The position numbers and the translations under genes were made by a program. DNA of 64,000 nucleotides from Octopus sinensis (taxonomy: Eukaryota): positions 109,554,001 through 109,618,000 of the forward strand of contig NC_043000.1 of the NCBI RefSeq assembly GCF_006345805.1, in the 5' to 3' direction. Of this stretch, positions 5,832-43,696 are shown in pieces; the stretch's first letter is position 1; the number at the start of each line of letters is the position of its first letter. The notes beneath the pieces were generated by a model. That model saw only the letters and a program-made list of their open reading frames with translations, was not told where the DNA came from and searched no databases.

Positions 5832-5852
5832 ATGGCTGACGAACCTAAGAAG
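5832..5852 (+). CDS. Candidate first coding exon (MADEPKK) of the uncharacterised giant-exon gene
   Basis: ATG in good context (gcaATGG), then AAG|GTACGT donor, phase 0. Compatible with the phase-0 acceptor at 15278. Short, so chance is possible. Confidence 0.5.
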
Positions 5853-6570
5853 GTACGTTCTAACATGTTTGATTTCAGTGTCAGATTGTGTGTGTATCTG
5901 TCTGTCTGTGTGAAAGCGCTTCATATCTTGTATAAATATGCATGTAGTATGTATTGGTGGCGTGTTTTAAACTAAGTTCGGTAGAATTTGTTTCAAGTAG
6001 CGATGTCTTTTCTGGAGATATTTCTCTGTTTTATAGGGAGTATTTTTTTTTTTTTTTTTCAGTTTTTCGTAGCTGCAGGTCTGATACGATATTTGTTTGT
6101 GATTAAATGCTTGTAATTGTAAAAATAAGCCGGTGGAGACGTAATGGATATATTTCGCTGTTTTGCATCTGTTATTCATCTTATACATTCTCATGCAACA
6201 TTTATGCTTATAACGCTGTTGACACCGCCCGATTAAATGGTACTGCTCATGTATTGAAACCCGTTAGGCAGCTGATAATGGGAATATGTTTGATGAGCTA
6301 ATTGCCTGTGAATCTTTTATACTTTGTAGTCTCGTTGTTCTATGTTGTCCTTCATTCTCGTTGTGTTCAACTTGTTCTTGGTTTATTGGTTTATGGTGGG
6401 TTCGTTGTGTATATTATTACCATACGTTGGTATTGTCGGATTATCTTTCATTTGGATTCAATTTTTAGTGGTCAGTGTAATACGTATTTAAGGATATTGG
6501 TGGAAGTCAGTCAAACGGCCAAAGCGCAAGTCCCAGATACTCTGATCTGCCTAGTTTCGGACCAAACTGT

Positions 6571-7132
6571 CATCATCATCATCATCATTGTTCGACCGTG
6601 ATCGAGACTATGGAATTTACCATGCTACGCCAGACTTCACGGTCCATCATGGTATTACGGAGGTCCTGTTGCTGGATGCCTGTATCCCTGGAGATTACAT
6701 CAGGGTAGGAGAGTGTGCGCCCTCTGGTATTGCAAGTAGATGGCTTCCAGAGGAGAAGAGGAGAAATTACCTCTTTTTCAGCTCTACAACAATGTCCAAC
6801 AAACTGGACTCTCTTACCTTTCACAAAAGATGACACAGATGGTAGTTTCCCATATATTTGCATTTTGGTTGGATGGCGCTTCCACGAGAGATTTTGAGCT
6901 CTCATAAGGAGGCGAGTGTAGGTTCCATCCAACCGCCTCTCAAGCTTCTTTGATAACGTCCAGGTTTCTGAGCCATATAGTAGAATTGGTTCGACTGTGG
7001 CTTTGAAGATTTCAAGTTTGAAGTCTCTACTTAGATTTGATGACCAGATCCTATGCATGTCATTACAGGCTGACCAGGCCATACCCTTTCTAGTTAGATG
7101 ATATGTATGACCCAAGATATTTGTAATCAGAA
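6571..7132 (-). mobile_element. 5'-truncated RTE-clade LINE (RT C-terminal part)
   Basis: ORF with KLEIFKATVEPILLYGSETWTL...FVGHCCR...DREVWR, a (TGA)n tail, and a 10-bp TSD ACCAAACTGT at 6561-6570 and 7133-7142. Confidence 0.9.
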
Positions 7133-7214
7133 ACCAAACTGTACGCACCGATGGAAGGGAAGTAATATGACAGCCTGGGCGCGTTGTATGTCCTTTTATT
7201 ATTCAATCTGCTCG

Positions 7215-7650
7215 CATAGCTGTCGGCTTAAAAGCTCGCGTTGTAGTCACGTAGTTTCCGCTTCAGTCCCACTGCATGGTACCTCGAACAGGTGCCTTCT
7301 TCTATAGTACCGGATCAAATTACTTGCGAGTGAATTTGATTGATTGGAAACTCTGTGGAAGCCTGTCACATGTGTGTGTACGTGTGTGTGTGTGTGTGTG
7401 TGTACTTCTATGTGTGTGTGCTTGCGCGCCTGTGTGTGTATGTTTGTATATATGTCCCTACACCACTTGACAACCGGTGTTCGTTTGCTTATGTCCCCGT
7501 AACTTAGCGGTCCGACAAAAATTACAGATAGAATAAGTATCACACTTCAAAAATAAGTGCTGCGGCTGATTTATTTGAGTAAAAAACCTTTCAAGGCCGT
7601 GCCCAAGCATGGCCGCAATCCAATGATTGAAACAAATTTAAAAAAAAGAT
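7215..7650 (+). mobile_element. SINE family A, old diverged copy
   Basis: Same head, core, microsatellite and tail order as 636-1075, with many substitutions. Confidence 0.7.
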
Positions 7651-8279
7651 ATTTTATGATGTAATATTTGGCTCTAATTAGTTTATTGTTGCTGTTGTTT
7701 CTGTGTTTGTCTGATGAGGAGGAAGGGAAAGTGTTCTTAGATCCGTGTTGTAATAGCGTATGTGTGTGATAGGATGTGATGACGGGTTTGTTTGTTTTAT
7801 TACTGTGCTTGTTTGTTGTTGTTTTGTGTGTGTGTGGTAGGTCCGGTGAAAGGTGCACAGACTTCGAAAATCCTCCGATTGATGAGACCAATGCCGTTTA
7901 ATTTTCCTCATAAACTGTGGCCTGTCGTCAGTCAATGACCTGTACAAGGATGGAATTCCAGAGGGTTGACATTTTAAGGAAAATAAAAATATTATTATTA
8001 TTATTATTATCATCATCACCATTATTACTATTATTATTATTATTATTATTATTATTATTATTATTATTAAGGTAGCGAGCTGACAGACACGTTAGCACAC
8101 CGGACAAAATGCTTAGCGACATTTAGTCCGTCATTATGCTCTGAATGCAAATTCCGCCGAGATCAAGTTTACTTTTCCTCCTTTAGGGGGCCGATCTAAT
8201 CGACTAGTCCCCTTCCTGCAAATCTCGGGCTTTGTACCTTTAATAAAAACGATTATAAAAGAAGTCGTTATTTTTATTT

Positions 8280-40819: not shown

Positions 40820-42344
40820 TTAAAGGGAAATAACTCAGTCATACTAAATTTAATTCACACTTTCGTCTTTCCCTTGATGCTTGCAGTTATTACAAGAGAG
40901 AAAACCATTTTATTCTTTATTTTTTTGCTGTGTCTGGGGAGAGCTTCAGTCATTTGACTGTGGCCATGCTGGAGCACCGCATTTAGTCGAACAAATCAAC
41001 ACCAGGACTTATTTTTTGTAAGCTTAGTACTTATTCTATCGGTCTCTTTTGCCGAACCACCAAATGATTGAAACAAGTAAAAGACTAAAAGAATACCAGA
41101 AGAACGTTCCCTACCATTAAACCAAGAAGGTTCTTTGAATATGTTATGATTCATTCTAAGGTTAAATAGTAATTCTGTTTACGTTTGTGTAACTGAGATA
41201 TTTTGCTTGGATTATATAGTCATTGGTGTTACATTACTTTCTATATTCTGTAACTGTCACAATATACTTTCCTAGGCCTGAAATTTTTGTGGGGAAGGGG
41301 CCAGTTGATTAGATCGACTCCAGTACACAACTGGTACTTAATTTATCGACCTCCAAAGGACGAAAGGCAAAATCGACCTCGGCAGAATCTGAACTCAGAA
41401 CGTAAAGTCAGACGGTCATAATATACAAACATTTCTCATGGCACCAGTACACTTTACAGATGCTTATATTTTTTCATGTTTTCCGTGAATTGTTCACGGG
41501 TCCAGCTAGCTCATATTATTATCTTTAGTGCTACGGTGTGGTTTGAGGGATATTTGCTATTTCTAATGGGTCTATTGCTGCTATTTCTGCAGGTCGTCTG
41601 ACTGCGTAGAGCCGTCGTGGGCAGACTGCCGTCCGCAGTTCTTTCTAAATGACACACCAACGAAAATTGACCCTGAATAGTTTTAGTGGTGCGTCCGTCT
41701 TTACGTTCTGAGTTCAAATTCCATCGAAGTCGACTTTTTTTTTCATCCTTTCGGGTTCGATGAATTAAGCACTGCGATCAAACTAATCGATTATCCCCTC
41801 CCCAAAAAAATGTCAGGCCTTATGCTAATAATAGACAGGGTTATTCGACTGAGTTCATATTGCACGGAGGTCGACTTTGCCTCTCATCCATTCCGAGTCG
41901 ATAAAATTAAGTACCAGTCATACACTGGTGTCGATGTAATTAACTAATTGCTTTCCACTGAAAGAATTTATGGCATTGTGCCAACCGGGGTACGCGTAAT
42001 CGAAGGAACAGGAAAAGTATGGACACGGAATCTTGAAGTAATCACAACCATCCAGGTTTCTTTCAAATGTGTGGAGAGCTTTTAGCGATTTTGATTCGCT
42101 TACCGTTGTGAAGAAGACCTTCCAGCCATATTTAAGAGCAGAGAAAGAAAAACTGATTTCATGCGAAACTGGAAATTCAGAATGATGTGTGGGTCTGTGT
42201 CTCTAAAATTGTGTCTGGAATTGATTTACTTGGTAAAAGTGCGAAACTCACCCACTTCGATAAAAATGGAACAACATTAAATTCAGTTAAATTTCTTAAA
42301 TAGGCAGAAGGCCAAACTTTTTTTTTTTTTGTGGTGTGTCTTCT

Positions 42345-42560
42345 TCTTCTTCTTCTCTTCTTCTTCTTCTTCTTCTTCATCCTTTTTTTCCCTTGTGGAG
42401 CATAGGGCCTCAACAGTTGTTTCCCACTTTTTGCGGTCATTGGTGTGTTTCTTGGCTGCTTCGCATGTCAGGTCGTTGGTCTTGAGCTCGTCCAAAATGC
42501 TCCGCTTCCATGTCTGCTTCGTGTGGTGTGGGGTACAGTGAATGGCATAAAACTCACTAC
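42345..42560 (-). mobile_element. RTE LINE extreme 3' end
   Basis: KQTWKRSILDELK...DRKKWETTVEALCST followed by a (GAA)n tail. Confidence 0.7.
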
Positions 42561-43275
42561 TAAACGGGTATTTTGTTTTATTGGTGCCGGAAAGAGGGAA
42601 AGTAAAATTGACCGAGGCAGGATTAGAACGTTTCGAATTAAATTGAAATGAATCATTGATCATACATGTCGTTCGAGGCTGAATGGGATTTGAACAGCGA
42701 AAACTTGGCGACAGGATGACCTCCACCAATGTGACTTCTGTCGGTTGTTGATTTCGTGACTAAATGATTTATGTGACTCGTCACTACCATTAATAATAAC
42801 AATTCAGATATGTATGTACCCCTCGAGTAAAATGTTATTAGTATTCAACCAAAAAGCAGCCAACTGGCAGAATTATCAGCGGCATCTCTTTAGGTTCCGT
42901 GTTCAAATCGCTTGGCGGGATTTGAACTCAGAACGTAAAGAGATGGAAGAATTTGCCTTTCATCCTTTCAGAGTCAATGAAATAAAGGACGAGTCAAGTA
43001 CTGGAGTCGATGGAATCGACTAAGACCCCCTCCCCTCAAAATTACTGACCTTGAACCCGGCAACTGACCAACGTTCCATTCAGGTGGAATATTGTTTCTT
43101 TACTACCCACAAGGGGCTAAATATAGAGGGGACAAACAAGGACAGATAAACGAATTAAGTCGATTACATCGACTCCAGTGCGTAACTGGTACTTAATTTA
43201 TCGACCCCGAAAAGATGAAAGGCAAGGTCAACCTCGGCGGAATCTGAACTCAGAACGTAGTGATGTCGCTTACTT

Positions 43276-43289
43276 GTTGCCATGGAAAC
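43276..43289. promoter_or_regulatory. RFX X-box-like palindrome GTTGCCATGGAAAC
   Basis: Near-perfect match to the X-box consensus GTYRCCATGGNAAC. Function is not shown. Confidence 0.35.
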
Positions 43290-43461
43290 TAGGTAACTGG
43301 TTTTAGAAAAAGAATTAAGCTTCTTGTCAATTTAATCTACTAAAAAAATAGCTTTATGAAAAACGATGCCCTTACGTGGCCAGACGGCCCTTCGATGGAG
43401 TTGAACAACAAAAAAAGCATTGTTCGTTGTGTGTCTTAAATAAGTTATTGATTATTTACAG

Positions 43462-43696
43462 GAAAGAACTCATCCGCAAACAGAAAGCGAATTCACAGAA
43501 GAAAGTCACTGAGAACTGGAAACATCGAGAAAAGGACTTCTGTAGACAGGAGCTAAAACGTTTAAAGGAAGTCCATCCATCAAACAGAGCTAACCTCTTA
43601 GCTTCGTATAACGCATATCTCCAGAACAGTGTTGGCTCTCGCAAGGCTATCACCGACTACATCAACAAACTTTCTCTCTCTTCGAGAATAAAATGA
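43462..43696 (+). CDS. Terminal exon KELIRKQKANSQKKVTENWKHREKDFCRQELKRLKEVHPSNRANLLASYNAYLQNSVGSRKAITDYINKLSLSSRIK*
   Basis: Acceptor attatttacag|G, phase 2, open to TGA. AATAAA at 43745 and 43757. Protein-like sequence. Confidence 0.72.

Follow-up and report, generated by a model that had tools for sequence, protein, structure and literature searches.

A 9.2-kb frame-preserving exon ahead of a conserved C-terminal module in an uncharacterized octopus gene

Can a single very large exon, read in or left out, decide whether an octopus gene yields a small protein or a giant one? This question is raised by a stretch of 64,000 nucleotides (nt) from Octopus sinensis (RefSeq assembly GCF_006345805.1, contig NC_043000.1, positions 109,554,001 to 109,618,000 of the forward strand), which is called the window here and in which all positions are counted from the first letter. 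An earlier reading of its letters, the original prediction, had placed an uncharacterized gene at 5832-43696, whose product could switch from ~150-210 to ~3200 amino acids (aa) through one symmetric 9.2-kb exon. The gene is LOC115211134, annotated as an "uncharacterized protein" on the chromosome record CM016862.1, where the giant open reading frame (ORF) is 100% identical. Our analysis favors an account in which LOC115211134 is the orthologue of a conserved family, its giant exon sits in an old molluscan slot, translation starts at 5832 and the exon is included in all or nearly all transcripts; taken as a whole, this account is probably correct.

Gene structure and selection on the giant exon

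The longest ORF of the window extends over 20938-30159 of the plus strand and encodes 3073 aa, while the second longest, of 335 aa, lies inside a (TATG)n microsatellite. The giant frame is free of stops from 20869, just after the TAA at 20866-20868, to the TAG at 30157-30159. At ~37% G+C, with ~7% of random codons being stops, our arithmetic gives a chance of ~e^-218 for 3097 open codons. Five predicted small exons have AG and GT borders and join in frame into a 147-aa product; when 20879-30088 is added between the second and the third, the frame is kept and the product measures 3217 aa. The stop-free segment, its phase-1 borders and the coordinates of the small exons are thus as originally described. 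The 147-aa product itself stands as an in-frame join, but it needs read-through of the donor at 40779, which is used by all models. With the annotated 3' end, the gene consists of seven coding exons, from the probable start at 5832 to the stop at 43696 (Table 1).

The NCBI annotation comprises four isoforms, X1 to X4 (XP_036358208-211; 3232, 3230, 3103 and 3101 aa, respectively), all of which were rebuilt exactly from exons of the window. Each of these proteins begins with MNGGNNATVV at the ATG at 20938, within the giant exon; the annotated gene range is exactly 20938-43696, and the coding sequence (CDS) of all four isoforms is without 5832-5852 and 15278-15353. The isoforms differ in two respects. 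Both of the predicted donors lying 6 nt apart, 30088 and 30094, are used, giving ..KSF/VNPKY in X2/X4 and ..KSFGN/VNPKY in X1/X3, and the tandem donors are also found in O. bimaculoides. In X3/X4, the 79-nt exon at 35454-35532 is left out, resulting in a frameshift and an early end (..SKPPHRKLLSRAIAAARQPRVCVTQQKT, then a stop), by which nearly the whole conserved module is lost. These transcripts look like substrates of nonsense-mediated decay, because the stop precedes the last junction. The resemblance between the ends of exon 2 (..AGTTTTG/GTAAGA) and of the giant exon (..TCTTTTG/GTAACGGTAAC), described earlier as S-F-G before GTAA, is real, both reading ..TTTTG/GTAA; it covers at most 9 nt and is therefore attributed to chance and to the common phase.

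Purifying selection acts on the giant exon. A comparison of O. sinensis with O. bimaculoides over 3064 codons gives a dN (nonsynonymous divergence) of 0.033, a dS (synonymous divergence) of 0.122 and an omega (dN/dS) of 0.27, and all nine indels are in frame, each comprising one or two whole codons. The selection that had been suspected on the 9 kb is therefore borne out in these two species. Omega varies along the exon, from 0.14-0.27 in the first half up to 0.59 near residues 2130-2730; the module has an omega of 0.17 (180 codons). The block containing the giant exon is 93% identical between both octopuses, in comparison with roughly 75-90% for the non-coding DNA of the locus. The label "spacer", used before for this region, may undersell it.

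The encoded region is polar (rich in S, N, K, E and T), of low hydrophobicity and non-repetitive. In a crude charge-hydropathy test, 41 of 60 windows of this product were scored as disordered, hence not uniformly so. Tandem Repeats Finder reported no array over 19663-30186 and dozens in the flanking introns. Transposon fragments on the minus strand (2899-3354, 6585-7148, 19456-19854 and 56891-57394) lie in the flanks and introns, outside the exons, and include a Tc1/Tc3-type transposase helix-turn-helix (PF01498, 37 bits) and a piggyBac-like DDE domain (PF13843, 1.5e-38). The 9 kb is thus as free of transposons and microsatellites as had been claimed. By eye, two of these ORFs resemble the tail of a LINE (long interspersed nuclear element) reverse transcriptase and a mariner fragment, both without a Pfam match. 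A 34-nt minisatellite of 13.8 copies (40057-40523) ends ~110 nt 5' of the acceptor of the exon at 40634, and a 107-nt tandem repeat of 3.5 copies is found in intergenic DNA (49873-50244).

No homologue of the giant exon was found outside Octopus by sequence search. Neither internal repeats nor any likeness to the long N-terminal extensions of Haliotis, Batillaria or other members were detected, and an origin by internal duplication, or from sequence common with gastropods, was rejected on these grounds. Pfam gave nothing above threshold for the giant ORF, the 147-aa product, the full X1 protein or its 226-aa tail, and PF15309 was likewise not matched. A ciliary/sperm or nuclear role, proposed from scattered LPxI/L motifs and basic C-terminal clusters, gained no support: LPx[IL] occurs four times against 0.9 expected, and there is no match in Pfam, the PDB or Foldseek. 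The 90% cluster of the 3230-aa octopus protein also contains two unrelated peptides from ENA (56-57 aa, MPEFEIKFEANRLHEIG..; P0005 and P0006), presumably as an artefact of clustering.

The conserved module and its exon slot

With the C-terminal part of the protein (last 226 aa) as the query, 1.84 billion representative proteins were searched exhaustively by phmmer. At E<=1e-3, 80 of these representatives match, among them those of Sepia (1.3e-53) and Haliotis (3.1e-30), in agreement with the small conserved module of the original prediction. Most family members are 200-430 aa long, and some carry N-terminal extensions of 100-1800 aa. The family is characterized by the motifs ELxRLxxxLxxExxxIxxP, PYxFNxLEPYYNT, GLxDPW, EGSTRLPKFPVV, DVPxLR, DFYRMELD and AYLQNTPGSRKA. 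The octopus module has the core motifs P-[YF]-x-F-x-x-L-x-P-Y, GLCDP, D-F-x-R-x-E-L and AYLQNxxGSRKA, and its residues occupy the invariant columns P65, P73, Y74, P106, D160, R163, L166, R177, Y187, G193, S194 and A197 of the family alignment (A1).

Named sources of the family are limited to molluscs (Haliotis, Batillaria, Nucella and Octopus) and rotifers; the others are unnamed transcriptome or metagenome ORFs. Members include Haliotis asinina XP_067667859.1 (1258 aa), Batillaria KAK7502929.1, Nucella KAL8599461.1 and a 255-aa transcript product of Sepia esculenta. Bdelloid rotifers have fusion proteins in which the module follows at least one PLAT/LH2 domain (P0032, P0084, P0098 and P0099), and in P0084 a long series of PLAT/LH2 repeats is found within 1062 aa. 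This fusion offers a possible functional lead, towards lipid or membrane association. None of the nine members scanned gave a Pfam hit above threshold. The abalone protein XP_067667859.1 carries the automatic name "dentin sialophosphoprotein-like"; this identity was rejected, since no Pfam family reaches threshold in the octopus or scanned proteins, and the name reflects the acidic, Ser-rich extension of the abalone protein.

Structural searches were equally negative. In the PDB, sequence and profile comparison gave no credible relative, the best being RFXANK (E 0.003) over a coiled stretch. The AlphaFold2 model of the Sepia short form, based on a 34-sequence alignment, has a predicted local distance difference test score (pLDDT) of 76.5 and a predicted template modelling score (pTM) of 0.41, and consists mostly of helices and extended linking segments. 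Foldseek returned 0 matches for this model in the PDB. With neither a Pfam family, nor a PDB relative by profile, nor a Foldseek match, no structural counterpart was found for the family. Judged by sequence similarity, the module is a conserved animal family without a name or Pfam entry.

The organization of the abalone gene places the giant exon in an evolutionary context. The Haliotis asinina gene was rebuilt exactly from its locus (L014; the O. bimaculoides and Batillaria loci are L013 and L015). It resembles the octopus gene in the C-terminal module, in the lengths and phases of the module exons, in the large 1-1 exon placed in the same intron and in its neighbor RPL11 (Table 1). This ribosomal protein gene is positioned tail-to-tail 3' of the gene in the window, in O. 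bimaculoides and in Haliotis asinina, and its conservation as a neighbor identifies the octopus and Haliotis genes as orthologues. Since the large 1-1 exon of Haliotis occupies the same intron, the slot predates the split between gastropods and cephalopods. In length, the octopus exon exceeds that of the abalone threefold, and no shared sequence is detectable between them. The giant exon had been described as a lineage-specific spacer; by comparison of the two genes, this holds for its sequence and size, but the slot itself is old.

The octopus gene has also lost an exon. The segment from EGSTRLPKFPVV to DVPxLR is the most conserved one of the family and is encoded in Haliotis by a 135-nt exon of phase 2-2, and it is missing from all octopus models. 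No relic was found by tblastn or with a hidden Markov model (HMM) in the corresponding octopus introns (40780-43461 of the window and L013 28669-30952), the HMM giving E>2. The same HMM detects the segment at 8e-19 in Haliotis, and at 9e-19 in an intron of Batillaria (L015 ~33132), which indicates that a real exon has been left out of the deposited Batillaria model. Sepia retains a degenerate copy. Because synteny and exon plan match, the octopus gene is regarded as a true orthologue that has lost the segment in its own lineage.

Table 1. Features of LOC115211134 in the window and corresponding exons of Haliotis asinina. Lengths are followed by the phases of both exon borders.
Feature	Position	Strand	Octopus	Haliotis	Remarks
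Coding exon 1 (ATG, MADEPKK)	5832-5852	+	21 nt (0-0)	30 nt (0-0)	donor GTACGT; outside all NCBI CDS
Coding exon 2 (IESSSKPVSNEDGKHQSELVPSSSF + G)	15278-15353	+	76 nt (0-1)	157 nt (0-1)	first coding exon of O. bimaculoides model
Giant coding exon	20879-30088	+	9210 nt, or 9216 nt with extension (1-1)	2880 nt (1-1)	~3070 aa; acceptor backed by O. bimaculoides model
First CDS exon of X1/X3	20938-30094	+			NCBI model, rebuilt
First CDS exon of X2/X4	20938-30088	+			NCBI model, rebuilt
NCBI start ATG, X1-X4	20938-20940	+			not conserved: ATC in O. bimaculoides
Extension to second tandem donor (GGTAAC GGTAAC)	30089-30094	+	6 nt		adds Gly-Asn in X1/X3
Module exon 1 (VNPKYIQEFKELEKILRETASKISKPPQ)	31553-31634	+	82 nt (1-2)	103 nt (1-2)	homologue of Haliotis exon 31452-31554 (L014)
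Module exon 2 (..PYVFSSLKPYYDTSLVRYMMRQ)	35454-35532	+	79 nt (2-0)	79 nt (2-0)	left out of X3/X4
Module exon 3	40634-40779	+	146 nt (0-2)	158 nt (0-2)	donor after ..AAGGA used by all models
Read-through tail of 147-aa product (..LSSDLNFKKRTK, stop)	40780-40819	+			backed by no model
Module exon 4			absent	135 nt (2-2)	L014 34573-34707
Last coding exon (..AYLQNSVGSRKAITDYINKLSLSSRIK, stop)	43462-43696	+	235 nt (2-0)	235 nt (2-0)	stop 43694-43696
RPL11, 3' part (Pfam Ribosomal_L5)	~58170-60100 onward	-			placed by alignment to annotated O. bimaculoides neighbor

Start codon and use of the giant exon

The annotated starts of the two octopus genes do not coincide. The O. bimaculoides orthologue LOC106884259 (XP_014791026.2, 3271 aa) begins with MESSSKPVSNEDGKHQSKLVSSSSF/ANKEVVSNTSGSG, the giant-exon part starting with ANKE, and was rebuilt exactly from its locus, which is collinear with the window: exon 2 at L013 10001-10076, the giant exon at 15412-24609 and four module exons. 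In this model, exon 2 is spliced in phase 1 to an acceptor that matches 20879. Exon 2 opens with ATG in O. bimaculoides (L013 10001) and with ATA in O. sinensis (15278); conversely, position 20938 is ATG in O. sinensis and ATC in O. bimaculoides. As each start codon is missing in the other species, both NCBI starts look like artefacts of 5'-incomplete models.

In comparison, exon 1 is well conserved. The 21 nt of ATGGCTGACGAACCTAAGAAG are all identical in O. bimaculoides (L013 4429-4449), including the donor GTACGT that follows them. Against the CDS start of the Sepia esculenta mRNA, exon 1 matches at 17 of 21 nt, and the next best of the 2519 ATGs on both strands of the window at 14. Full-length family members mostly start with M-[AS]-[DE]-[EQ], and in both octopuses no stop interrupts the frame in exons 1 and 2 and at 20879-20937. 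The ATG at 5832 is the sole start kept in both octopuses and in the Sepia mRNA, and on this conservation it is probably the true one. The long protein would then probably measure 3284 aa in O. sinensis, and that of O. bimaculoides 3278 aa. The two upstream exons and the phase-1 acceptor of the original prediction are thus backed by the O. bimaculoides model, the identity of exon 1 and the Sepia start, and its 5' structure is better than the public CDS. A TATAAA at 5820-5825, 7 nt 5' of this ATG, is kept in O. bimaculoides; it is probably part of an AT-rich 5' untranslated region (UTR), because the role of a TATA box would put the transcription start past the ATG. The 5' UTR of Sepia is at least 168 nt long.

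Whether the giant exon is skipped is a separate matter. A skip product with the annotated 3' end (40634-40779 joined to 43462-43696) would have 212 aa and would be collinear with the 255-aa cuttlefish product. No such isoform exists among the four O. sinensis isoforms or in the O. bimaculoides model, all of which include the giant exon. Exact look-ups of seven candidate skip products gave no match, in a collection that seems to be without any transcript-derived ORFs of LOC115211134, and a word-index protein search with the 147-aa product was negative as well. The proposed switch from ~150-210 to ~3200 aa is therefore possible in terms of frame, but no octopus model or looked-up protein skips the exon. 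Its 1-1 phase is required by the phase-1 intron in which it lies, so that the symmetry is no evidence of alternative use.

The cuttlefish gives a different picture. Contigs of ~1 kb, with an A-run after AATAAA, encode the 255-aa protein, in which MAEEAKQ.. is followed by 29 residues and these directly by the module. In the collection, 43 blocks contain exactly this protein, and a close variant is present on one more contig. Eleven retrieved contigs (L002-L012) represent 11 separate sequencing runs, two of which are larval RNA-seq of Sepia esculenta according to the depositing papers (PMC10466719, PMC10442824). The most parsimonious reading gives the large exon to the cephalopod ancestor, and the Sepia short mRNA may therefore be a skip isoform.

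Several of these observations weigh against a conserved start at 5832 combined with near-constitutive inclusion. The evidence for the use of exon 1 and for its junction to exon 2 is conservation. The CDS start that O. sinensis has within the giant exon fits an internal start equally with a 5'-incomplete model. A short mRNA without the large exon is abundant in Sepia esculenta larvae, and it would resemble a skip isoform if Sepia still has the large exon. The database negatives are weak, because a module query in the word-index search also missed the known 3230-aa proteins. Moreover, an O. sinensis skip transcript without exon 1 has no good ORF, and the annotation pipeline could thus have dropped it.

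A true cassette switch, in which alternative splicing of the giant exon yields proteins of ~3284 aa and of 212 aa, the latter with the ancestral short architecture, is the most serious competitor. Both borders of the exon are in phase 1 and backed by gene models, and Haliotis has a large exon in the same intron, yet Sepia expresses its short polyadenylated mRNA. Many transcriptome-assembled members of the family are short, and several genome-annotated mollusc members are long. The acceptor of the giant exon is not strong by our reading, as a purine-rich stretch (..ctaaccaacaaaag, directly before the exon) lies between the pyrimidine tract and the AG. Nevertheless, the O. sinensis annotation caught the 6-nt donor choice and the skipping of the 79-nt exon and no skip of the giant exon; in O. 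bimaculoides, a skip transcript would carry a clear 205-aa ORF from the ATG of exon 2, and none is annotated. The seven look-ups point the same way, and Sepia may have lost the exon, or its mRNA may derive from a paralogue. Biologically meaningful skipping in octopus is thus conceivable, and we consider it the less probable outcome. Somewhat more doubtful still is the broader idea that the expansion exon is an optional cassette across molluscs, giving either a ~250-aa helical protein or a version with 1000-3000 selected polar residues, of which octopus would be the extreme.

Two further readings concern the giant frame itself. It might be an independent transcription unit starting at 20938, the upstream exons belonging to nothing or to a UTR, as the common MNGGNNATVV start of the four proteins and the annotated gene range would suggest. 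The ATC of O. bimaculoides at this position, the splicing of its model from exon 2 into the giant exon, the frame that is open from exon 1 to 20937 in both species, and the two small 5' coding exons that likewise precede the large exon in the Haliotis orthologue make this very improbable. An origin of the frame as a relic of a transposon or virus, as a pseudogene in decay or by mere chance would agree with the lack of Pfam domains, with the absence of a homologue outside Octopus and with the simple composition. However, a frame kept open for 9.2 kb in two species, with an omega of 0.27, indels in frame only, neither internal repeats nor transposon domains, and a higher identity than in the non-coding DNA on either side, leaves practically no room for such an origin. 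Inclusion of the giant exon in nearly all octopus transcripts, with translation from exon 1, is consequently retained as the default reading.

Based on this reading, the following course can be proposed. The typical family product measures 250-430 aa, and its core is a C-terminal module of helices in which the motifs PY.F..L.PYY.T, GLCDP, DFYRMELD and AYLQNTPGSRKA occur. The phase-1 intron that in molluscs separates exon 2 from the first module exon hosts an old, fast-evolving "expansion exon", which measures 2.9 kb in abalone and has reached 9.2 kb in octopus, and whose 1-1 symmetry is inherited from the host intron. Translation from the ATG at 5832, continuing across exon 2 and the giant exon as far as the module, would give the 3284-aa protein, a long, mostly polar, selected region ending in a divergent copy of the module, from which octopus has lost the 135-nt exon for EGSTRLPKFPVV..DVPxLR.

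Comparison with other giant exons

Giant coding exons are known from several vertebrate genes. The neuron-specific cassette exons of ankyrin-B and ankyrin-G measure 6.2 kb and 7.8 kb, and ankyrin isoforms with and without the giant exon are documented and tissue-regulated. Like these, the octopus exon is a single, multi-kilobase, frame-preserving exon (9210 or 9216 nt, 1-1) encoding a long and largely unstructured insert. In contrast to the ankyrins, inclusion alone is documented in octopus, a form without the exon is seen only in Sepia, and there is no sequence relationship. ALMS1 (exon 8, with a C-terminal ALMS motif) and BRCA2 (exon 11) have very large constitutive exons for disordered sequence. 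Their resemblance to the octopus gene lies in the joining of a very large exon, quick to evolve and weakly to moderately constrained, to a short conserved module. This is an analogy only, as neither shows sequence or Pfam similarity to the octopus gene.

LOC115211134 was already present in the public annotation; new are the recognition of the conserved start, the family as defined here, the slot common with abalone and the loss of the 135-nt exon. No paper on LOC115211134, nor on a giant exon in cephalopods, was found in the literature, and no major open question is changed by these findings. The annotated starts of the octopus gene and of its O. bimaculoides orthologue are probably misplaced, the sole shared ATG lying 15 kb upstream. 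The family is newly defined, having no Pfam entry, solved structure or literature. Within one intron slot, an exon has grown from less than 3 kb to more than 9 kb and has lost all sequence similarity while purifying selection was kept, which makes the locus a case for the study of how long disordered regions evolve. If the skipping is true, the gene would be an invertebrate parallel to the giant exons of the ankyrins.

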